From positions 4,092,001 through 4,156,000 of the forward strand of contig JBLDXI010000015.1 in NCBI GenBank assembly GCA_047495785.1: 64,000 nucleotides of DNA, given 5' to 3'. The notes under the pieces are model-generated. The model made no database searches. It was not told the DNA's origin and saw only the letters and a list, made by a program, of their open reading frames with translations. Numbering within the stretch: the first letter of the stretch is position 1; each line of letters starts with the position of its first letter. The translations under genes and the position numbers were made by a program. Below, in pieces: positions 37,071 through 52,498 of this stretch. Source of the DNA: Lepidodermella squamata (Eukaryota > Animalia > Gastrotricha).

Positions 37071-37481
37071 TCAAAGCCACGTTAATTTGACCACGTTCTG
37101 CAGCGCCACAATGCCTATCCAGACGATGACCGTCGTGAAAAAAATGCCCGTAAAAATTGCGGCGATGCTCAGCTGGATCGATGTTCGATAATCTATTTCA
37201 TCGGCTTTCGATCTTCTCGCGAAAATGAAAGCAGGTATCGAGAGGCAGGAACAGCCAATGAAGAGAGCAGTGGTTGCAAGTGTCAGTGCGATTTTCTTCA
37301 GCCGCCCGATTTCCCGCTGGTGAAAGTTGGCCTCGTCGTCTCGAAGAACAGGCAGCGAATCGATGATGATAAAAGATGAGTCACTGGAGATTTTCCGAGT
37401 TAAAGTAACGGCTGGTAGGTCGGGCGAGTCAACGCGAGCTTTTTCCATTTCGGGCTCTTTGAGACTTTTGTGTAAGCTCAT
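37071..37481 (-). CDS. CD225/dispanin-like membrane protein
   Basis: LKKIALTLATTALFIGCSCLSIPAFIFA...YRTSIQLSIAAIFTG family motif. Confidence 0.72.
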   Translation of the reverse strand: MSLHKSLKEPEMEKARVDSPDLPAVTLTRKISSDSSFIIIDSLPVLRDDEANFHQREIGRLKKIALTLATTALFIGCSCLSIPAFIFARRSKADEIDYRTSIQLSIAAIFTGIFFTTVIVWIGIVALQNVVKLTWL

Positions 37482-37894
37482 TTTTCGGTAGTAATAATAT
37501 TATATACTAATAAACCTGCACCCAGTGAATAATTTTATTTACTGGTTTGTTTTTCATAATATTCGCTGCTAGTAATTCAATACCAGGCGATTGAGGCGGG
37601 AGGATCCGGCCAGTGGGATTTAGCAGCTTGCAGCCTGTACAAACATGTTTTGCATTCATGATGATATATATGTAAAAATGACAAGACATATATTATTTAA
37701 TTAAACTGCCAGTATTTATCTCAATTTATTTAGACTCGAGGAGCAACTTAGATATAGTTGTATTTCGCTACAATAAATCTATCACTTGTTAGTTTGGTAT
37801 AGTTATCATAGTTGGATTATAGTCCACTCAAGTCCGGTTTATGACATCATCCGAAATATGAAGCATAAATCATTCATTCTTCATCTGCAATGAT

Positions 37895-38299
37895 TTAGTT
37901 CCATTGATGCAAAGAATTAGCAGAAAAGTAGTTATCTGTTAATGATTTAATCAATAGCAGAGAAAGAATAAGACCAACGACGATGCTGACAATGCTGCAT
38001 TGGATAGACTTCCAGTAACTTGCTTCCGGCTTGTGCTTCTTGCAGGCGCAGAAGATAGCTGGCAAGGAACAGCAGGGACAGCCGATGCAACAAGCCACAA
38101 TCGACAAGATCAATGCTTTTTCACGCAGGTTTTGGGCGTCGGGGTCGATTACTTTGGCAGGCTGTTGTTGAATGATAACTTGCGCATCACCCGGTTGGGA
38201 TTGGATGGGTTGCTGCTGGATCGGCTGCATCATAGTCATTGGCTGTGGTTGCCCGCCGTTATTCCCATAAGCCATCGGGGCCTGATCAGCGGAAATCAT
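37895..38299 (-). CDS. CD225/dispanin-like membrane protein, Q/P-rich N-terminus
   Basis: LREKALILSIVACCIGCPCCSLPAIFCA...YWKSIQCSIVSIVVG. Confidence 0.75.
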   Translation of the reverse strand: MISADQAPMAYGNNGGQPQPMTMMQPIQQQPIQSQPGDAQVIIQQQPAKVIDPDAQNLREKALILSIVACCIGCPCCSLPAIFCACKKHKPEASYWKSIQCSIVSIVVGLILSLLLIKSLTDNYFSANSLHQWN

Positions 38300-38534
38300 A
38301 TCGTTGAATGATTAACGATTTCTAGTAAAATTAGACAGAAAACAAATGAATTCTAAAATATCAATTCTGAATTTTTAAGGTAGCGATAGTTTTGGCTTCC
38401 CTTGACTTCATATTCCTCAAAACACGCGATGGAGCGAGGTAGCAAGGTAGCACAGGCGTGAAAGAATACTTCGCAGATATTTATCAGAAGCCTGGATCCT
38501 GGCTACTTGCAACACCTAGCTAGGAGAAAGACAA

Positions 38535-38924
38535 TCAAAGATAGCCTTTTAGGTTCGTCGGCATTAACTCAATAATCATTAGCGAAACAAGAATAAGAGC
38601 AACGACGATGTTGAGAATGCTGCACTGGATGGACTGCCAGTAAGTGGCTTCCGGCTCGTGCTTCAAGCAGGCGCAGAAGATAGCTGGCAAGGCACAGCAG
38701 CAGGGGAAGGTGATGCAACAAGCAACAATCGACAAGATCAATGCTTTTTGACGCAGGCTTTGGGCGTCGGGGTCGATTACTTTGCCAGGCTGTTGAATGA
38801 TGATTTGCGCATCACCCGATTGGATGGGTTGCTGCTGGATTGGCTGCATCATAATCATCTGCTGTGGTGGCCTGCCGTGTTTCGCATAAGCCATCGGGGC
38901 CTGACCTTCATCAATGGAAATCAT
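38535..38924 (-). CDS. CD225/dispanin-like membrane protein; tandem duplicate of 37895-38299
   Basis: High similarity to the neighbour, extending into upstream non-coding DNA (GAGCGAGGTAGC, GGATCCTGGCTAC). Confidence 0.75.
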   Translation of the reverse strand: MISIDEGQAPMAYAKHGRPPQQMIMMQPIQQQPIQSGDAQIIIQQPGKVIDPDAQSLRQKALILSIVACCITFPCCCALPAIFCACLKHEPEATYWQSIQCSILNIVVALILVSLMIIELMPTNLKGYL

Positions 38925-40387
38925 TATAATTGAATGCCTAACGATTCCTAGTAATCAGAAAAAGGAGTTATCTGGAAAACTTGGAATTTAGAAAATCATT
39001 ATTGAATTCGTAGGGTAGAGATAGTTTTAGCTTTTCTTGTCTTCGGCCTTCACCTTCCTCAAAACACGATGGAGCGAGGTAGCGACGATGTGAAACAAAT
39101 CTTTGTAGATAGTTATTAGAAGCCCGGATCCTGGCTACAGGCGACGCCTAAGAGGGCTAGAATGAAAGATTTGGCTTAGGTTCGACTTCCATGTTAAACG
39201 CGAAAATCGTTGAGATACATCGGACAATTAGCATTGAATTCCAATTTCACGATGAGAAAATCTAAAATAAGAAGTTAATGGGTCATCATCAACAATAATA
39301 TGCTATGAAAACATCCTGCTTAGCTAATCCTCAAAAAATCGCCGAAAATGAAAAAAAATTCCCGAAGTGAACAGCTCTTTTTCTGAAGTCAATAAGAAAT
39401 CAACGAAAATCGGCGTGCTTCAAATTTAAACAGGCGAAAATTGAGCACCTCGCCAATGTTTTGCTAAAAATGAGTTTGAAAATTGTTCGAAGCTCCTATT
39501 GTATTATTCTATTTTACATCGGTAATCAGATAAGATGGCCTTGAAATCGCACCTTCGACCTGGAAATCAGTTTATGTAAACTACTGTTAGAGCTTTGGCC
39601 AACTGACAACTTAAGTTTACGGGAAAGCTATTGAAAATTGGTCAAGTTCCAATAAATTGCCCCAACGGGTACCTAACTTGGCCGATTTGGCGAGATGGTA
39701 CTTAATAGCGAGAAATTGATACGCCGCTAAGCGAGGTAAGCATTTGGCTTTTACAACTCTGATGAAACGATAAGCCCATTGGCTGTTTGGCCGCACATGG
39801 CTTTTTCAAGGTGGAAATTTAGCAAAGCACTGTTTCCGACGGAAGCTTTTGCAGGAGCTTGGTGGACAAACACGACCCTTAGAGCTCATGAAAACTATTA
39901 GAAGATCAAAAAAGTTGAAAGAAGTTTGCGCCACCGTTCGTCGTCGCCGTCGTGATGCAATGATGCACGTGCGGTCAAAGTGATCGCCGCCATAACGAAC
40001 GCAAAACGAACGATGATGACACGCGCGTGGCACACACGCGACTGAAAAACGTTTATAGGCCATTTTTTATTTGCCACACACGCGCCGGTTTGTTAATGGT
40101 GCGGTTTTTATGAATCACACTGTACAACGAATCCGTAGTCGCTTTTGGCCAGCGTTCGACCTATATTCCAAATTTTCTGAAAATTATTTTGGGACTGCTG
40201 AACTGCTGGGAAACGTCTATAATGTTCATTTATCTAGAATATTTTGTTCAAACCAAAAATTGAAGCAGCGAGGTGAACAAAATTTAGATAATAAATTCTC
40301 CTTTTATTCGGATTTTCTATGATTAAATAGAAATGGCATAGGTTTTGAATACTCGATATAATTTGTCGCTTGCTGACTATTTGACAA

Positions 40388-40951
40388 TCAATTAAAGTTC
40401 TTAGGCTTCATCGGCGATCCGATGGTCGTTGTTGAATTGTTGAGTAGTTCAACAAAATCCATTTCGCTGATAGAAGCCGACAAGATGCGAAGGCCTAGCG
40501 AACATATGCCGAGGGTGACGCCGATGACGAGCGCGGCGATGCTGAGCTTTATCGATAAGCGATACCTGTTCTTCGATCCGTTCGGCTTGCACGCGTAGAC
40601 AATGGCAGGCACGGCGAGGCAGAGGCAGCCGCAAAATAGCGCGACTATCGACAGCGGCATGGCACAACGCCTCAGCCTATCCGCCTCTGGGTCGTAATGC
40701 ACGTGCGGTATTTGTACGAGGACTTGAGCACCTGGTGGCATGGGTTGACCCGGGACGAGCATGACTGGTTGTTGTTGGATCGGGGCACCGTATTGCTGTT
40801 GAGGCAGCATCGGCACTTGCTCTGGTGGCACTTTGATGTCGGTATTCGGGTCTTGACCTTGAGATGGGTAGTAATTTGGCGGCTGGGCATACCCTGGCTG
40901 TCTCGGATAATCTGGCTGTCTCGGGTAATCCGGTTGTTTCGGATAACTCAT
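40388..40951 (-). CDS. CD225/dispanin-like membrane protein with Pro/Gln/Tyr-rich N-terminus
   Basis: YPKQPD-YPRQPD-YPRQPG repeats and PPNY; LRRCAMPLSIVALFCGCLCLAVPAIVYA...YRLSIKLSIAALVIG. Confidence 0.78.
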   Translation of the reverse strand: MSYPKQPDYPRQPDYPRQPGYAQPPNYYPSQGQDPNTDIKVPPEQVPMLPQQQYGAPIQQQPVMLVPGQPMPPGAQVLVQIPHVHYDPEADRLRRCAMPLSIVALFCGCLCLAVPAIVYACKPNGSKNRYRLSIKLSIAALVIGVTLGICSLGLRILSASISEMDFVELLNNSTTTIGSPMKPKNFN

Positions 40952-42729
40952 TTTCGCTTCAAAAACCTAAAAATAAATTCAAAAGTTGAAACAATGATGA
41001 AAATATATGAAAATCAGAAAAATCCAAGCTAAATGAAACCAGCTAATCCGAATTCCGCATAAAATATCTCAAAATCTAGACGCTCTTAGTGCGAAAATAG
41101 TTTTCCTATATCTTCCTTTTCCTGTAATTTGATGAATCGCTCTCGAAGTGCAGTAAACATATTACAGGATTATATATTATTTTTATCGGTCAAAAATTGA
41201 TCGCCACGAGCGAAGAAATCAGTCTTTTGAAGGCCTAGGTATGGCTGATCTCTGATACGGAGTGTAATATAGGCACTGAAGGTGAGAGAAAACAGGGCTT
41301 GGATAAAGCTATATAGCAGCGAAATTACTACATAAATCAGCCTTATAATATTGTGTGTTATTGCGTGTTGTGTTCGAATTCGATCTCAGTTGAAAAGCTA
41401 TATAGTATTATAGTGTGCGATCTGTGATGCGGTTGGGGTGCTGCATAGAATATTAGAGGGAATATAGCTGCTTCTCTCTGCCACTGAAAATAAAAAGCAC
41501 AGACCGCGCGCGCTCATGGCATACACTTTTGCATCTTATAGTGTAAACAACATAAATAGTAATGACGACGGCTTTCATAGCCGCATGTGCGCCGTATAGA
41601 AATATTGGGCGCGTTTTTTACTCACGTTTCTGCGTGCTATGTATAGGCCTTAGTCACGCCGATAATAAGAGCCGGCGCTAACTATGTGATCATTTTTTAT
41701 TAGAAAGGCGCTGTGAACACTTAAATGCCTATACTATGCAAATATTAGCCGGTTTGCTAAAAAACGGCTGAATAGTTTGGTACACGTAAAAAAAATCACA
41801 AAAATATGCAAAACATCCTCTAATGTATGTATATGTTATCACAAGGGAATGAATATCCTAAATTTGAGACGCTAAGAAGAGGGCAGTTCAATGAAAAAGG
41901 AGTTGAGACAAAAGGCGCACTCCACAGCGTGCGTCTTCAAAAAAGGAAATGAAAGGGTAAAGGGGTCCTATTTCGCGGAAAATGGGTTTATCTAAACAAA
42001 GGTAATGATGGTGTGAAATTTTTTTATATTGGTCAAAGTTGGCATTTGCATATGAAAAATAGGAAAAAACGTGCAAAAAAGTTGAATGTGGAGGATTATC
42101 TTCAATCCTATCCTCGATCTTAAATGATAAAAAATGTCAAAAAAAAACGCGAGTAATCCCGCGTATATCACTACACAAGATACTAAAAATTGGTTCAAGG
42201 CCAACTACTTTACTAAGAAATCGATTTATGGTAATTTAATAAGAGAGGATTAGAATTCTTACAAACCCCTCAGTTTTGGGATTATCGGAACTTACCGATG
42301 ATAAAGGAATATAAATGCGATAGGATTGGAAATCGGCCCAAAGTTGATTTCAAAAGATTAGTTATTGGCATGTCATAAAAAATTTTTCAAAAGCCACTGG
42401 TTGATTTAGTTGGAAATTTAGGTTCGTGAAACATGAAGTATGTTCCTAGACCCTAGACGGGTCCGTTTTGCACGTCTTATAAGTGTCATTCTAAGATTAT
42501 CCGGGGTTCTCTGCTTCATTTAGAAGGATTTTTAATCCTATCGGATTGAGGAGAATTTCTCGTCCAAAGCCAAAAAGCGATTGATATAAGACCACGCTGT
42601 AGTATTTTATTAAAAATTGTAGGAATTGTTTCATTATTTATCAATTCAAATGATACAAAAGTTCATGAATTTACATAATTTCCGCGTGTTGAAGCTTCAA
42701 ATTGATTCGTTTATATCGGCGTTTCAATG

Positions 42730-43176
42730 TCAGTCATACAGGAAGTAAAATAGAGATCCAGAGAAGATGAAACCCAGGACCAGCGCGACTAAGCTCAGCT
42801 CGATCGAGCGAATGTAGATTTTTCGAGGCGAATTGCGTCTGCAGGCGCAACAAGCAGCCGGCAAGGCGACGCAAATGCAGCCAAACAGCATGGAGAAAAT
42901 ACTGAGGATAATGGCACAAGTTCGCAGGTTACCCGTCTCCTTTTCTTCCTCGATGTGGCGATCTGGTTCGACGATTCTGACCACGGTTGTCCTTGGAGGC
43001 TGTTGCTGTTGGACTGAAGGGCCACTCGAATCAAGACTTGGGTACAGTGGTGGTTTTGGCTCGTTGCCAGCCGGGTGTTGATATTGGCCACTTGGATGCT
43101 CTTCATAGGGCGGAGCATTAGGCGGCGGCATGCTCCAACCAACCGGTGTTGCTTGTTGTTGCTGATAGTCTGACAT
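42730..43176 (-). CDS. CD225/dispanin-like membrane protein
   Basis: P/Q-rich N-terminus with PPLY; LRTCAIILSIFSMLFGCICVALPAACCA...YIRSIELSLVALVLG. Confidence 0.78.
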   Translation of the reverse strand: MSDYQQQQATPVGWSMPPPNAPPYEEHPSGQYQHPAGNEPKPPLYPSLDSSGPSVQQQQPPRTTVVRIVEPDRHIEEEKETGNLRTCAIILSIFSMLFGCICVALPAACCACRRNSPRKIYIRSIELSLVALVLGFIFSGSLFYFLYD

Positions 43177-43581
43177 AATTTTGGCTAATTTAATTTTTAA
43201 GAAAAATGAAAAGAGAGCTCTGAATCGAGGTCGACACTTCGCCACATGTGATTCATTGGACGTAATTTTATCATAATTGTTGCGTCACCCTACCAATCGC
43301 ACAGAGAATTTCCAAATTTCGAGGAAAACCAGAGTTCTTTATTTTATAAAAATATTTGCTTTGTGATGCTTCCCTTCGATTTTCGTCACAACAAATTACA
43401 ATTATTTTCAGGCTTCTGTGGGAATTGAAAAACGACAAAATTATTTGTCAAATATATTTATTTTTTTTCGACAGGGATTTCAGCGATTGGAAGGTCTTCA
43501 ACACTCCCAGCAGCTGTAACAAAATTTAAAATCGATAAGACATTGATTTGGCAAGCAGACGATGAATATCGGTTCTGAAAC

Positions 43582-46500
43582 CTAAAGGTCAAGGGTCATT
43601 GTCAAAATCGCGTAATCATCTGAAGCCGCGCTGTAAGGCCGCGTCCCATCTTCGAGTTGGAAATTTGACGCATGTAGTGAGTAGCGTTCTTTGTAGCCCA
43701 ATATGTCTCGTTCCATCGCCTGAAAATATTAGTTGCCATGTCAAGATCTTGAGCAAGTTTTTCCATTCAAAAACTCACCTGTGTTGCTAAGGACGCGTTT
43801 TTAGTTAGGATGACCTTGTAACCAGCCTGGCGAGCTCTTCGAATCAATTCGAGTTCAACTTCGAGAAAAATCGCACTAGCATCATTTTGATCAATATTCG
43901 GATCGACGTAGACCATTCGATACGACAAGACAACACCTCGAGGTAGTTTACCAGTGGCTTTATCAGCGTACTTCTCCAACAATTCGTTGTACACCGGGAG
44001 TTCAGCGGCTGATAGAAGGGCTCGAACAGCTTCGATGCCCTGCCATACATTAGGATCCGTCACGCGGTCAGTCGCGTCACAGCACAGAATGGCACCAGCC
44101 AGCGAACTGCCATTTGACCGCCGTTTGTCGAAGAAAGCGAAAGACAGCGAGCCGACGTTACGGTACAAAGGCCATTCGCCTGAAATTAAACGTTCAAAAC
44201 CGGAATTTTCGAATCAAATCCTTACCATATAACAATTTTGAAAATGCATTATTTGGAAGCTTCAGCAGTTTTCCGAGAGGACCAGTTACTGAAAACGAGT
44301 AATCGATGCGTTGTATCAAGTGATCCGTGTCGCTTTTCTTCAACGCCTCTAAATTTTGATACGCCAACCAGTCAATGACTGGCAACGGCTCCTTCCGGCG
44401 TTTCTTCACAGCCCGCTCATCCTCGTCATCTTGGGACGATTCGAACGAGTCGGCCAGTTTTTGGGCGAATTGCCGTAGACTAGTATTGGGTGTCAGCAGC
44501 ATCTCGGCCAGGGCGTTGACGAACCCGAGTCGGTGAAGCGTGACGATCGCCGAAATCACCGATAGCGAGTTGCCGCCCTGGTTGAAAAACGTCGCTTCCA
44601 TCACCACCTGGCTGGCATCTAGGCCTAGCGTCGACGCGGCAACAAGGCGGACCGCTTCCGTGGCAGAATTGACTAGATCGTCTTCGTTCAATTTGAACTG
44701 GTCGAGTAAGGAATTTGTATTTTCACACGATTTTATCAATGCCTCTTGCGCTAGTTTTTTCAGCCGTTGTTGGTCAGTTTTACCGGTATGCGCTTGCATA
44801 GGGAAAGTACCGATCGGGAGAGGTAGCAACAGTTCAGGGACTGCGTAATGCGGCAGTTTTTCAGCCAGTGACACGCGAACGTTATCAGGGCGCAGGCAGA
44901 ACGACGCTTCCGGCCATGTCTCGTAGAAACCAGCTAGGCGGAACGTTGCACTTGCTTGATGCTCGATGGCTACAACGCGGCATTTTGGGGGTTGAATGTT
45001 ATTGGCTAATTGAGGTGGCTTTTTTGCAACTATGTCACGGATGATTGCTTTCAGTGTATCCTCGACTTGAACTGTGCTAACGCGATTGCCGCGAATTTTC
45101 ACAAGCGAATCGCCTCGTCCACAATGAACTATTAAAGAAGGAAAAGATCAGTTATCAATTTCGAAGTCAAATGAAAATTTCTCATACCTAGTTCACCACC
45201 TGGGACAATTTTTCCCAAATCACCCATGCTGAGAAGTCGATTTCCGATACCGATTTCCGCCATTCCGGGCGGTTTTGTTGAAAACCGATCGATATGCCTG
45301 GAAGACTCGCCAGCAAAGCCGAGGCAGACATTCTCTCCTGATACGTAGATGTGTCCGACCTGTCCGATAGGGACCGGGATTGGCATGTCCTCGCGGCAAA
45401 CGAAAATACTTGTGTTGTACACTGCCTTGCCAATTGATAGGAAACCATCGAACGTTCTCGCGATGACGTCAGCTTCACTCGCGAATACAGCGGCTGTCAC
45501 GTCGCCGGTGACTTCAGTCGAGCCGTAGAAATTCGCGAGACGAGGTTGGCTAGCGCTGTTGGCCAGGGTTCGGAAGAAACGACGGGCGAGGTCGGATGGC
45601 AACGCCTCGCCGCTGCTCACCACGAGGCGTAATGAGGCGAGGTCCGTTGCGGCACTGGGCAGTTCCAGCATTGCGGATAGGAGAGACGGAACCAGGATCA
45701 GCCGAGTGACAGCGTGTTCTCGAATCGTGTCAGCCATCAACGCGGCCACGTTGTCGCTTGAAGTCGCCGAGCTGCGCCACGCCTGAGCATCGACTACGAC
45801 GAGGCGCTGTAGTCGAAGCACCGCCCCGAGAACTTCGGTATACGAGTCCACGAATAGCACATTAGTCTTCGCGAGGCAAACATCAGACGCATCAGGGGCA
45901 AAGGGCAACTCGGCCCACTGCCACCTGAGTCGGTTTAAAATATTTGCGTCAGTTAGACACACACCTTTCGGGACACCCGTGCTACCGCTTGTGTACAATA
46001 TCAAACTCGGTAGTTGCTCCAGAGCTCCGTTTTTGGTGTCATTCAATTCTCCATTTAGTTCGATGCGCCCGTTGAGATTAACGTTCAAACCGGCACTGTT
46101 GCAGTCTTCGTCGATCAAAATCTTTGGGCATTGGCGCGAGGCTATCAGTTTGGACAAACCAAAATCCTAAAAGCGAAAATTAATATAAAAAAATCCTCCT
46201 TAATACTTTGCAATTACTTTTTTTAAATGATACAATTTAAGCTGGTCAAAGCGACCGATTTTCTTTTTATGAAGCCTACTCACCGTTATAACTGCCTGAG
46301 CCTTAGAATGCTCGAGAATGAAGGCATGTTGATCTGCCGTCTGAACAGTATCGAGGGGTACAAAAGGCACTCGTAGAGCGTTCAGTGACAACAAGGCAGC
46401 AATTCTTGCGCAACCGGGTGGCAGCAAAACAGCGATTGGTTTACGAAGCGAACTTGCACCGGGAAGTGTCACTCGAACGAGGTCAATCAGTCGATTGACA

Positions 46501-46709
46501 CACGCGTCCAAATGCGCGTAGGTCAAGCGCCGGCCTGATGGTTCGACTATAGCTTCGAGTTGGTTAGCGAAATGTGAATTTTTTTGAAATTGGCGTTGAT
46601 ATTCGTTATATATTGTCGTAGTCGGGTTGTCTTCGAGCTCCTGAGGTTGAACTCGGGTGCCATCGATGACGCTGGGCATAACTACGCTCACCAGCTTGTC
46701 CTCGCCCAT
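43582..46709 (-). CDS. ebony: Ebony-type NRPS-like beta-alanyl-amine synthetase, copy A (A-T-aaNAT-like); exons 46709-46284, 46166-45188, 45128-44226, 44179-43779, 43719-43582
   Basis: A-domain motifs LYTSGSTGVPKG, LFVDS, NFYGSTE, MGDLG, GRGDSLVKIRGNRV and TGKTD; carrier motif FFNQGGNSL; C-terminal GNAT-like domain with TKNASLATQ...LGY as in Ebony. Confidence 0.85.
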
Positions 46710-48016
46710 TTCAACCTCAGAAATGAAACGCCTAATACGAGAAAAATCTTGATATTATGACAAGGCTTGATATCCATTAAAAATTAACTGAACACCTTGG
46801 AAAATATTGCGGCCATGGAAGCAATTAAGTTTTTTATGCCTGGGGCCCGCTTGCTAGAATAAAGGCGGCTTATTCAAAAAAATCGATAAAGTCGCCTGCG
46901 GAAATTGTAACGAGTTAGAAAAATGCGGTCGCGGAACTTGAAAGAAACCTAGATCCTACACGCGGCGCTTTTAGATGCCTCCTGGTTTCACATGGGTATC
47001 GATTTTCGAAGAGAGTGTGAACTATATGGGAAGAGTATGATTTTCTGTGGCAACATGCCGGGCTTCATTTTTAATTCTGAGGATTGAAAAATTACTCGTT
47101 TACAAGCCTGAAGCTGAGAGATGATATAATGATCATATAAGCTGCCGAAAGGGATTCGACTATCAGTATACGCAATATTCACAGCTTTTTTCTCTAGGTT
47201 CACAGCAGCTGTAGAAAAAATGAGGAGAGAAAAAAACCCGAAAAACTCGCCGCTGTTTTTTTGCCAGTTGCAATGATGGATGAAAGCGCGCGATATTTTT
47301 CGGCCTCCCGTAAGCTATACAATATCAAAAATACTGATTACCGAAGCCCAGTTGTTAACCTAAAATCGCCGCAGTTTTTTTAGGTGTGCGCACATCACAA
47401 GCGGCACGAAAAAAACCGGCGTTTTTTTTACTTGGCTATTATAAATATTGAAGCGTATTGTTTTTTTTATAGCGCCTGGGAGGCACCTCAAACGGAATCG
47501 CAATTTTTGAGATAAACTGTGTATATATCCAAAATAGGGAGTACATGGCAATGTTTAATATTCGAAATTTCGTCGAAATTAGCTCACTCGAGAGCCGCAA
47601 CTACGTCGCTCTTATTATAAAGCAATAGCATATTACTTCATTACTTGACACACATATTATTATAAGTAAATGAAAGGCATCGATAGTGAAAAAAATTCGC
47701 TAAAATGTAAGCTACACCTGTGTTTCATATTATTGCAAGAATATCTAATCAATTTTAAGCATCTGTCTTTGATTGAAGCTTTCGTCACAAAACTCGCAGC
47801 TTCGCGTCAGTAGATCCGCTCTCCTGGACTATTATATGCTTGAAAACAGATTGAATCGATGTACTCAGCGAGTATCAGCTAGCAAAATTGATTCGAGTAA
47901 TGAATTCGCACGAAAGGAAGGAAATGAGGATTTCGCCTTTACGTTCATCTTAATACATCTATTTGACTCTTATCATTTATTCAAATTGTCAAAATCCTGC
48001 ACATCAGAATAATATT

Positions 48017-48533
48017 TTAATTATCTGGGTCACGAAGGTAATAAACTGTGCATCTGCATTTGTAGCCAGCTAAAATAGAGAAAAATATAAGAATAATGTA
48101 AAAAATTGGCCTGAAAATTTCACAAACCTGGGCATAAAGTGGAATAGACGGTATTGCCACCCATTTCAAGGCACGTTCCATTCGCATTCATACCGACAAA
48201 TTTGATTAAATACCGCTGCTGGCAGGCGTAATTGCAGTTAGCAATAGCTACATCCAGCGCGTCTCGAGCACTTCCGTGAAAATTGGTGTTCGGAGCTAGC
48301 GTAGTTGTTGTAGTCGTCGTCGGGCGAGGATTCGAGCAAGTTTTGCTCTGCGCATTCCAGACCCAAGCGTCGCGGCAGTCGCATACCCCCATCGGAAGTA
48401 TAGGATTCGGCTTTCGGCAGTAAAGAGCTGGATGGCAGCTGGAGTCAAAGAAGCAATCGACGCCGAATAGCAACTCGCCCGCGGTAGTTAAATGAAAGGC
48501 ACCTAACAACAGGAGACCTGCGAGCCTGAGCAT
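48017..48533 (-). CDS. Small secreted Cys-rich protein (EB/EGF-like module, Thr linker, second 6-Cys module); exons 48533-48128 and 48069-48017
   Basis: Signal peptide MLRLAGLLLLGAFHLTTA; C-x5-C-x5-C...CDC...C; TTTTTTT; NCNYAC...C...CP-AGYKCRC after a phase-1 intron. Confidence 0.7.
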
Positions 48534-48763
48534 AATGCTGCGTGAAAGCAAGAAAATTTCGACAAAGTAAGTCAAAGTTTACGGGCGTGTTCCTACACAA
48601 TTATAAAGTGCGCAAATAAAGCTTTTTTTATTGTCGGTGCTCGCCATTTTTTCCGCAACAGTAAAGCATTCAGCTATAGGCTTTGTAAACAAGAAATTAC
48701 AAAAACAAACAAAGGCATGAATAGATTCTTTTTATTTTAATAAAGCTAATATAGGATCAAAGG

Positions 48764-51691
48764 CTACAGGTCTAAAGTCATCGTAACCATGGCGTAGTCT
48801 TCAGGGGCATGGGAATAAGGTCGAGTACCGTCTGGAAGGACCAATTGGCAAGCATATACTGCGTTGCGCTCCTTGAACCCCAGCAAATCTCGTTCCAAAG
48901 TCTTATTAAAAATGAATGAAAAAAAACCAAGTTATTTTTGATAAATTAAAAGTTACCAGGGTTGCAGGTGAGGCATTTTTTGTCACGATTGTTTTAAAGC
49001 CGGCTTTTTTCGCCCGGCGAATTAGCTCGAATTCAAGCTCGAGAAACACCGATGAAGCGTCATTTTCCGGAATTTCCGACTCAACGTACAACATTCTATA
49101 CGACAAAACAGCCCCGAGTGGCAATTTCCCATCAGGTGAACCATATTGCTGGTACAATTCCTTGTGAACTGGAGCTTCAGTTGCATGTGAAAACGCGGCG
49201 ATAGCTTCTAAGCCGGCCCAGAAACTGGTATCAGGATTTTTTACCGCCAAATCAGTGCATAAAATTGCGCCAACTATCGCATCAGGCTGGCCGTTTTTAC
49301 GCTCATCAACGGCGACGAACGATAAATCGCCGGCTTTGGCGAAGAACGGCCAGTCGCCAACAATTGGGCGGTAATAAGCGTCGCTTGGTAATCGGAGTAA
49401 TTTACCAGCAATGGGCCCTAGAACCGAAAAGGAATAGCCCATCCGTTTTTGCACATAATGAGTCTCAGCATCTGACAACTCAGTTAAATTTCGGAAATTC
49501 AACCATCCAGGCCGCTCTTTAACTGAATCTGAGGTCGAAACGGCTAGCTGGTTGGAAACCTGTTCCAGCGATTTATTCGCCAGTAATAAATCGGCTGTTG
49601 CATTTGGAAAGCCAAGCTTGTTCAGAGCGAGGACTGCAGCGATGACTGACAATGAATTTCCGCCTAAATGGAAAAAAGTCGCATCCATAACGACTTGTTC
49701 GATTTCCAGGCCGAGAGTTGACGCTGTTACCAGTTTCACAGCTTCTTTCGCTGATTTTAAAACGTCTTTATCGTCGAATTTGTATTCACTGATAAGCCTA
49801 TCGATCTCAACGTTGCATTTCTCGAAATTGCGCTCGGCTAATTTTTTAAGGGCGATTTGATCAATTTTTCCGGTGTGAGCCTGAAGCGGGAAAGTTCCGA
49901 TCGGCATTGAGCTAAGAATTTCCGGCAGGGCGAATGGAGGCAGGTGTTCAGATAGAGATTTCCTAACGTTGTCTTGACGAAGACATACAGCTGCTTCAGG
50001 CCAAGATTCGTAAAAAGCAGCCAGTCGAAAGGTTGCTTTGTGTTCGACAGCGACTACGGCACATTTCGGTGTCTGACGTGAATTCGCGATTGGTGGCGAT
50101 TTTTCGAAAACGGCTCGAAGCACAGATTTTAGAGCGTCTTGAACTTGGATCGTACTGACGCGATTTCCTCGAATTTTCACCAAGCTGTCCCCTCTGCCGC
50201 AATAAACTTGAAACAAATTCGTAATAAAATTATAAGATGAACTTGATTAAAAGTTTATACCCAATTCTCCCCCATTCATGATTTTGCCAAGATCGCCCAT
50301 ACTTAATAGTCTATTACCATATCCGACATTAGCCAAGCTGGGTAATTTTACGGAGAATCGGTCGATTTGCCGTCTTGCCTCGCCGGCATAGCCTTGGCAC
50401 ACGTTGTCACCTGAAACGTAGATATGGCCAATTTGTCCGATTGGAACAGGAATGGGTAGATCTTCCTGGCAGACATAGATACTTGTGTTGTAAACGGGCC
50501 GACCCATCGAAACGAAGCCGTCGAACGTTCTCGCGATGACGTCAGCTTCACTCGCGAAAACAGCGGCTGTTACGTCGCCGGTGACTTCAGTCGAGCCGTA
50601 GAAATTCGCGAGACGAGGTTGGCTAGCGCTGTTGGCCAGGGTTCGGAAGAAACGACGGGCGAGGTCGGATGGCAACGCCTCGCCGCTGCTCACCACGAGG
50701 CGTAATGAGGCGAGGTCCGTTGAGGCACTGGGCAGTTCCAGCATTGCGGATAGGAGAGAAGGAACCAGGATCAGCCGGGTGACAGCGTGTTCTCGAATCG
50801 TGTCGGCCATCAACGCGGCCACGTTGTCGCTTGATGTTGCCGAGCTGCGCCACGCCTGTGCGTCGACTACGACGAGGCGCTGTAGTCGAAGCACCGCCCC
50901 GAGAACTTCGGTATACGAGTCCACGAACAGCACATTAGTCTTCGCGAGGCAAACATCAGACGCGTCCGGGGCAAAGGGCAACTCGGCCCACTGCCACCTG
51001 AGTCGGTTCAGGATATTTGCGTCAGTCAGACACACGCCTTTCGGGACACCCGTGCTACCACTTGTGTAAAGAATCAAGCAAACTCGATCGGTGTTTTCAG
51101 GTCCAGTAATCTCATCAGTATCGGAATTTTGATCGCTTTTCGATAAATCATCGTCATTTACCAGTATTGTTGGCGCAATTCCAGCGGGGATCATTTCCAA
51201 GTGACCATTATCCTAGAAATGTCCAGAAATTCACTTTTAATCTACCAAGCTTGCGTTTATTTTACCGTAATCACTGCCTGTGCTTTTGAATGGCCGATAA
51301 TGTAACGCCGCTGCTCGTTGGTTTGAACACAATCTAGCGGAACAAAAGGTACTCCAAGGGCGTTCAAGGCAAGTAAAACTGCTATCCTGCTGGCGCTCGG
51401 AGGCAACAGCACCGCTGCCGGCAAACTGTCTCCGTTATTCGCATTTTTGACGGTGAGTTCCAACTTTAGTTTCGATACAAGTCTTCCGATGTAGCTGTTG
51501 AGTTGGGAATAGCTAATAGCTTGCCCTTTTGGCAAAATTATGGTGGATGATGATGTTCGATTTCTGGCGACTTGACGTTGAAATTCTTGGAAAATTGTCT
51601 TTGCCGGTTCAGCTTCGAGGCGGGTCGGGTTGAATAAAATGCCGTCGGATACGCTAGGAATTTTCATCGAGTATGTTCCGTTCGAAGCCAT
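48764..51691 (-). CDS. ebony: Ebony-type NRPS-like synthetase, copy B; exons 51691-51266, 51212-50261, 50206-48957, 48901-48764
   Basis: Same A motifs; carrier motif FFHLGGNSL; C-terminal TKNASPATL...LGF...MTLDL*. The last exon is 138 nt, as in copy A. Confidence 0.85.
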
Positions 51692-52498
51692 TCTCGGCGA
51701 AAAAAAATCGTGTAATAGCCGGCGAGCGCGTACTATTTGATATATATAATGTACCTTGCGAGGAGTTATTTATTTTCACGACGTGTTGCCTGCTTATCAT
51801 AGGTAGCGCCCGTTCACCCATATAGCAGCGCAACTTCCTTGCGTCTGTTTTTCATTTACGCCGGCGCTTCTTCATCTTGCGTCCATAATAATAGGAACAA
51901 TCAGATAACAACTCGATACTTATCTATGTAGCCGGAAGACTCAATAATCTGGAAGAGAAATTATCTTAGGTCGATGAGCGGTAAAAAGTGTTAAGCTGGT
52001 TGGTGCGGGACCAATTATCATTCAAATCATTTAAATAAAATTCAACATATTAAATCGAAAATTGTCATTGTTTGTAACATTTAATTCTTTTCAATTTGGT
52101 ATTTCCATTCATTCATTGATTCACAATTTTGCATAGTCATCTTCTTCGTCGGCTGGGTCATGGCGCAGCAGCCTGAATCTAGGTCATCAGCCTCTCATTA
52201 GCGATAGACAGTCGTTTAATACGACGCACAAAAGCTGAACCTAACCACCTTAATAAAAATATAATCGCGTGATGATGACGTTCGTTTTTGCGACTTGGCA
52301 CGACGAACAAAAACGGCACGCGTCTATTTGCAATTGCTTGCGATAAAAGCAACAACAATCTTCGAAACTAATGCGTTTTCTCAGTTGATTATTGATTGAT
52401 TTTTTTGTGCTCAGATTCAAATCTTGCAAGAGTCTTTGACATCCATATTGGCTATTAAGCTTTTCTTATTGTTCAGAATAATTTTTATGGCATGAAAA

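Follow-up and report, generated by a model that had tools for sequence, protein, structure and literature searches.

Two tandem Ebony-type genes and their domains

A 64-kb stretch of the genome of the gastrotrich Lepidodermella squamata (GCA_047495785.1, contig JBLDXI010000015.1, positions 4,092,001 to 4,156,000; hereafter the window, in whose numbering all coordinates are given) carries two neighbouring, co-oriented genes, A and B. Both encode nonribosomal peptide synthetase (NRPS)-like enzymes with the domain order of Drosophila Ebony, in which adenylation and carrier domains precede a C-terminal domain of the GNAT fold. Gene A occupies 51691-48764 of the minus strand in four exons (921 amino acids, aa) and gene B 46709-43582 of the same strand in five (948 aa). 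The two proteins are 63% identical overall, a DNA comparison found the sequences of their flanks and introns to be unrelated, and a tblastn search detected no further copy or fragment within the window. We hold, with good confidence, that A and B are functional tandem paralogs whose adenylation core was homogenised by a later gene conversion.

Pfam, fold and homology searches were run on single exons, and the joined coding sequences were used for alignment and substitution counts only. In gene A, exon 1 (51266-51691; ATG at 51691, donor GT at 51265) encodes aa 1-142, including the start of the adenylation domain (AMP-binding, E 3.1e-9), and its start codon aligns with those of gene B and of the environmental ortholog described below. 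Exon 2 (50261-51212; acceptor AG 51214-51213, donor GT 50260, phase 1) encodes the adenylation core from motif A3 to A7 (AMP-binding, E 7.7e-42), exon 3 (48957-50206) motifs A8-A10, the carrier (PP-binding, E 1.7e-5) and most of the C-terminal GNAT domain, and exon 4 (48764-48901; acceptor AG 48903-48902) the final 45 aa of that domain together with the stop codon. Gene B is laid out similarly: exon 1 at 46284-46709 (ATG 46709, donor GT 46283; AMP-binding, E 8.3e-10), exon 2 at 45188-46166 with the adenylation core (AMP-binding, E 2.1e-37), exon 3 at 44226-45128 with A8-A10, the carrier (PP-binding, E 1.3e-4) and the start of the C-terminal domain, exon 4 at 43779-44179 with the middle of that domain (50% identity to gene A), and exon 5 at 43582-43719 with its end and the stop. 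All seven introns (46–117 bp) are bounded by GT and AG, and each joined frame contains a single stop, at its end. An AG following a T-rich run lies 1 nt upstream of the gene A start codon (51693-51694, minus strand) and another 6 nt upstream of that of gene B (46716-46717, minus strand); such sites would fit spliced-leader acceptors.

Motifs A3, A4, A5, A7 and A8, the A10 lysine and the GGNSLS serine were located in both proteins. The putative phosphopantetheine-attachment serine is S644 in gene A (49653-49655, minus strand) and S656 in gene B (44566-44568, minus strand), each inside the PP-binding match. The last ∼230 aa of A and B had no Pfam match when searched exon by exon, neither to an acetyltransferase model nor to any other, and were characterised using small profiles built from A, B and the environmental ortholog. 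The profile of the C-terminal half of this domain, which includes the residues encoded by gene A exon 4, matched the solved C-terminal domain of Ebony (PDB entry 6dym) with an E-value of 1.4e-6 (31.8 bits), followed by a beetle arylalkylamine N-acyltransferase (E 0.003). The profile of the N-terminal half also had 6dym as its top match, with an E-value of only 0.092, and a single-sequence search of the PDB with the domain did not find Ebony, which was recovered by profiles only. Three motifs are held in common with Ebony and kept in both copies (E-N-x-A, T-x-N-x-S-x-x-T and D-G-x-R-P).

Structural comparison pointed the same way. An AlphaFold model of 48957-49529 of gene A was of low confidence (predicted local distance difference test score, pLDDT, 59; predicted template modelling score, pTM, 0.63), and with this model Foldseek placed 6dym first (E 1.8e-3, probability 1.0), insect amine N-acetyltransferases coming next. 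VIA-align returned the GNAT fold throughout, with 6dym at Z 9.7 over 151 residues (the longest alignment listed covering 152), and the language-model look-alikes of the domain were arthropod aralkylamine N-acetyltransferase clusters. Based on the profile and fold matches, the C-terminal domains of A and B are homologous to that of Ebony. The earlier note on this DNA had described two intact genes of adenylation, carrier and GNAT domains, related to Ebony; the open frames, the intron boundaries and the domain matches bear out both the integrity of the genes and their architecture.

A maximum-likelihood tree with 77 rows was used to place the adenylation domains. In it, the window clade fell on the same side of a branch with 97% support (Shimodaira-Hasegawa-like approximate likelihood ratio test, SH-aLRT) as all ten named animal ebony-like rows, and the 16 named bacterial rows lay across that branch. 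Neither gene encodes a canonical NRPS module (condensation, adenylation, carrier), as no exon of A or B matched the condensation domain PF00668 in Pfam. The vertebrate beta-alanine-activating enzyme AASDH (ACSF4-U26) also joins adenylation and carrier domains, which are followed by PQQ-like repeats; an identity with this enzyme was rejected, since the C-terminal part of the window proteins has the GNAT fold and matches no Pfam repeat family.

A search of 1.84 billion representative proteins with the C-terminal domain (phmmer) produced a single match at E ≤ 0.001, P0001, which proved to be an exon of a single-copy ortholog present on three ENA metagenome contigs, L001-L003 (ERZ27333047, ERZ23486764 and ERZ23486787). 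A word search with the C-terminal region found no relatives, and a metagenome scan for the domain gave 299 pattern matches, none of which (0/299) was confirmed by tblastn. The ortholog has the domain layout of A and B and was modelled at 914 aa (L001 4496-7406); its neighbours on the contigs are FAD monooxygenase and enoyl-CoA hydratase genes ahead of it and a Cys-loop receptor gene after it, and the sequence on either side, about 4.5 kb upstream and 3.3 kb downstream, contains no second copy. In every region A and B resemble each other more than either resembles the ortholog, so the duplication probably took place after the split from the ortholog lineage. It is old, because synonymous sites between the copies are saturated. 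The first two introns have the same positions and phases in A, B and the ortholog. Within the C-terminal domain, gene B is interrupted by a 46-bp intron (44180-44225, ahead of its exon 4) that has no counterpart in gene A, and the ortholog has an intron elsewhere (L001 7048-7109) and lacks the last intron common to A and B, the junction at gene A exon 4 being continuous there. Introns have therefore turned over within the C-terminal domain across the three genes.

Gene conversion of the adenylation core

Residues 188-375 of A and 197-384 of B differ at a single position (aa 306) out of 188. At the DNA level the alignment between the two genes was limited to this near-identical core, and the best segment covers 548 nt with 19 mismatches, almost all synonymous and in frame. 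It lies at 50521-51068 in gene A (minus strand; aa 191-373) and at 45448-45995 in gene B (minus strand). The segment scored 472, compared with a maximum of 60 across 2000 codon shuffles, none of which (0/2000) reached the observed value. Within the tract, substitutions per synonymous site (dS) between A and B amount to 0.146 and those per nonsynonymous site (dN) to 0.002, whereas synonymous sites are saturated in all other parts of the two genes. The tract begins at motif A3, ends 22 aa beyond A5 and includes all nine pocket positions between 235 and 331.

An identical core could in principle arise without any exchange of DNA if purifying selection on the protein were very strong. The tract is indeed the best conserved part relative to the outgroup ortholog as well (71% identity, with dN of 0.25 vs 0.58-0.77 elsewhere), and immediately 3' of it the protein identity continues for two residues, to aa 375, and is followed by good conservation while third codon positions differ; this adjoining conservation is ordinary purifying selection. 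Selection at the protein level, however, leaves synonymous sites unprotected, yet dS is low in the tract and saturated in the flanks and in comparisons with the outgroup. Inside the tract, the comparisons of A with the ortholog and of B with the ortholog both reach synonymous saturation, and therefore no silent-site constraint operates there across species. Furthermore, the G+C content of third codon positions (GC3) rises to 0.67 in A and 0.63 in B within the tract, compared with 0.43-0.54 in the flanks, and no comparable rise was found in the ortholog. The increase is thus confined to the pair, and it fits GC-biased conversion. We rejected purifying selection as the sole cause on the strength of the segment score, the tract dS and the pair-specific GC3, and regard its probability as negligible.

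An assembly artefact, in which reads of one paralog were pasted into the other, is also very improbable. Assemblers can go wrong at repeats of about 0.5 kb that are almost identical; the two tracts nevertheless differ at 19 of 548 positions, in frame and almost always synonymously, which argues against a pasted copy. The same low probability applies to the notion that one gene is dead, as more than 920 codons remain open in either gene despite saturated synonymous divergence, which would not be expected of a pseudogene. Both readings were rejected on these grounds. The near-identical core is consequently the product of interlocus gene conversion between the paralogs, because dS is low inside the tract and saturated in the flanks and relative to the ortholog, and because A and B share a raised GC3 that the ortholog lacks.

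Open frames were also seen on the opposite strand of the tracts, 145 aa at 50632-51069 (plus strand) and 75 aa at 45559-45786 (plus strand); these are most simply explained by the high G+C content there (GC3 0.63-0.67) and gave no sign of being genes.

The nine pocket positions (235-331) were read from an alignment of 120 homologs, and the mapping was checked on ungapped HMMER alignments to NRPS domains in the PDB. The window sequence F-V-D-S aligns with the F-D-x-S motif, which makes position 235 Val and position 236 Asp. All alpha-amino-acid adenylation domains keep Asp235 (PMC12283262). The resulting code, VDTIVSFGD, is the same in A, B and the L001 ortholog and agrees at eight of nine positions with that of a moth protein, "Ebony, partial [Operophtera brumata]", whose code VDTVVSFGD is shared with a Limulus protein. 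Other arthropod matches (Anopheles, Diploptera and Darwinula) read VDSVVSFGD, one of two "ebony-like" Glandiceps proteins (P0004) reads VDSTVSFGD, and 90 of the 120 homologs begin with VD. A bacterial code for beta-alanine, VDWVISLADK, was absent from the papers searched; the nine residues VDWVISLAD occur in two unnamed matches, P0062 and P0104. Read in this way, the pocket of A and B is of the beta-alanine type (Val235/Asp236). Beta-alanine is the likely substrate activated by both enzymes, given the eight-of-nine match to moth Ebony and the kinship of the domains.

The two enzymes very probably join beta-alanine to amines. The adenylation domain would activate beta-alanine, the carrier domain would bind it in thioester linkage to its phosphopantetheine arm, and the C-terminal domain, which resembles an arylalkylamine N-acetyltransferase, would pass the beta-alanyl group to a free amine. 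The old duplication was followed by one or several conversion events that copied about 550 bp between A and B. The copied stretch encodes the section of the adenylation core that recognises the substrate (from A3 to slightly beyond A5), so that both enzymes now share one amino-acid pocket.

Several points weigh against this interpretation. The phmmer search provided one relative only, and the link to Ebony therefore hangs on a small profile; the structural model has a low pLDDT (59) and omits the last 45 aa, which are encoded by a separate exon. The tree does not resolve the relationships within the ebony-like side, which also contains unnamed metagenomic rows and two with automatic NRPS names from the Joint Genome Institute (JGI). 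Lastly, the assignment of beta-alanine rests on the pocket code.

Divergence outside the tract and possible roles of the two copies

Outside the tract the proteins have diverged along most of their length. Identity between A and B is 45% in the N-terminal adenylation part (187 aa), 78% from A6 to A8, 56% in the C-terminal adenylation subdomain (Asub), 58% in the carrier domain and 51% in the C-terminal domain. The earlier note had contrasted an essentially identical amino-acid-selecting core with clearly diverged carrier and C-terminal domains. The near-identity of the core is real (one difference in 188 aa) and its cause is conversion; it does not form a conserved island next to acceptor domains of unusual divergence. 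The carrier and C-terminal domains have indeed diverged, but they are not the sole parts to have done so, and the C-terminal domain shows no excess of divergence over the rest of the protein outside the tract. The further proposal that both enzymes load the same amino acid agrees well with a pocket that is identical at all nine positions in A and B and nearly so in moth Ebony.

Relative rates were counted in about eight regions with the L001 ortholog as outgroup. Changes were symmetric between the copies in every region except the C-terminal domain, where A had 34 unique changes and B had 17 (p 0.024, uncorrected). This is a hint of a possible shift in the C-terminal domain of copy A. The least conserved block of 40 aa in the domain is aa 761-800, with a dN of 0.76.

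The earlier note had concluded that the diverged C-terminal domains choose different amines for the same amino acid, giving two distinct small-molecule signals. An identical donor pocket joined to C-terminal domains that are just 51% identical speaks for this, as do the doubled number of unique substitutions in copy A and the variable block at aa 761-800. The C-terminal domain is, however, not more diverged than the N-terminal adenylation part, Asub or the carrier, the rate asymmetry loses significance once corrected for about eight regions, and the three Ebony motifs are kept in both copies. Drosophila Ebony by itself takes several amines, and divergence of the C-terminal domain therefore need not mean a new specificity. 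We regard two different amines as possible but somewhat doubtful.

Alternatively, the copies could produce one common set of beta-alanyl amines, each copy in its own tissues or stages. Such a split in expression would be consistent with two copies that have stayed intact long past synonymous saturation, with unrelated flanks and introns, and with the retention of all catalytic motifs in A and B. In Drosophila, one ebony gene acts in cuticle as well as in glia. PMC10531068 cites known functions of Ebony, in pigmentation among others. The split does not predict the rate asymmetry of the C-terminal domain, and we consider it a serious candidate that falls a little short of an even chance. The two readings are comparable possibilities. 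Our best guess is that the copies divide the roles of one ancestral enzyme, division by tissue or stage being at least as likely as division by amine.

A stronger version would hold that repeated conversion of the recognition subdomain has been kept by selection, locking both enzymes on beta-alanine and leaving the acceptor domains free to diverge, such that the pair makes two beta-alanyl amines, one of them possibly a signal like the schistosome pheromone. We think this unlikely. If true, it would amount to a natural subdomain exchange in an animal.

Additional reading frames lie around the pair. A 151-aa open frame between A and B (48120-48575, minus strand) begins with a stretch resembling a signal peptide and contains many cysteines as well as seven threonines in a row; it had no Pfam match and may be the gene of a small secreted protein. 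Because of this intervening frame, A and B are tandem but perhaps not immediate neighbours. Beyond gene B, five small open frames on the minus strand within 37071-43245 (37071-37481, 37895-38299, 38535-38924, 40388-40951 and 42730-43245) each combine a proline/glutamine-rich start with a cysteine-rich membrane segment of common pattern, and look like a tandem family; one of them had a weak, sub-threshold match to CD225/dispanin (E 0.0034).

Relation to known systems

In insects, enzymes of the Ebony type conjugate neurotransmitters and supply precursors of the cuticle; in schistosomes, they make a sex pheromone. The window genes resemble Drosophila Ebony in the succession of adenylation domain, carrier and an arylalkylamine N-acetyltransferase-like domain that replaces the condensation domain. 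The Ebony C-terminal domain (6dym and related entries) is both the profile homolog and the top fold match of the window domain, the pocket agrees with moth Ebony at eight of nine positions, and in the tree the adenylation domain falls together with animal proteins named as ebony-like. The window genes differ from Drosophila Ebony in a C-terminal identity of only about 16-22%, in the presence of two tandem copies rather than one gene, and in their gastrotrich rather than arthropod host.

Sm-NRPS of Schistosoma mansoni makes the pheromone beta-alanyl-tryptamine. The window genes appear to fit the wider clade formed by this enzyme and its relatives in other phyla. Relatives of Ebony and Sm-NRPS have been reported from several phyla (PMC10531068); Gastrotricha is not named in that survey, and our literature search found no paper linking gastrotrichs and Ebony. 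An intact pair in this little-studied phylum widens the Ebony-type family, and its two enzymes, with one donor pocket and acceptor domains that are 51% identical, constitute a natural experiment.

The closest stand-alone relatives in fold are the insect arylalkylamine and agmatine N-acetyltransferases (for example 6v3t, 7ciu and 5gif), which share the GNAT fold and the same long insertion with the window domain over 151-152 aligned residues. Unlike the window domain, which is fused behind a carrier, they are separate enzymes that use acetyl-CoA.

With respect to the conversion tract, the nearest parallels are found in bacteria and in the laboratory. Partial exchange of the adenylation core (Acore) dominates recombination in bacterial NRPS genes (PMC8097286), and swaps of the recognition subdomain have been used in NRPS engineering, as cited in PMC11355689 (Kries 2015). 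As in both of these, part of the adenylation core bearing the specificity code was exchanged in the window, and Asub and its interface with the carrier remained native. The exchange in the window differs in having occurred between animal paralogs and in its outcome, which homogenises the copies (concerted evolution) and introduces no new substrate. The pair is a clean animal example of conversion confined to the very adenylation subdomain that is exchanged among bacterial genes and swapped in engineering, and it adds to an already known family a tidy case of subdomain-limited concerted evolution.

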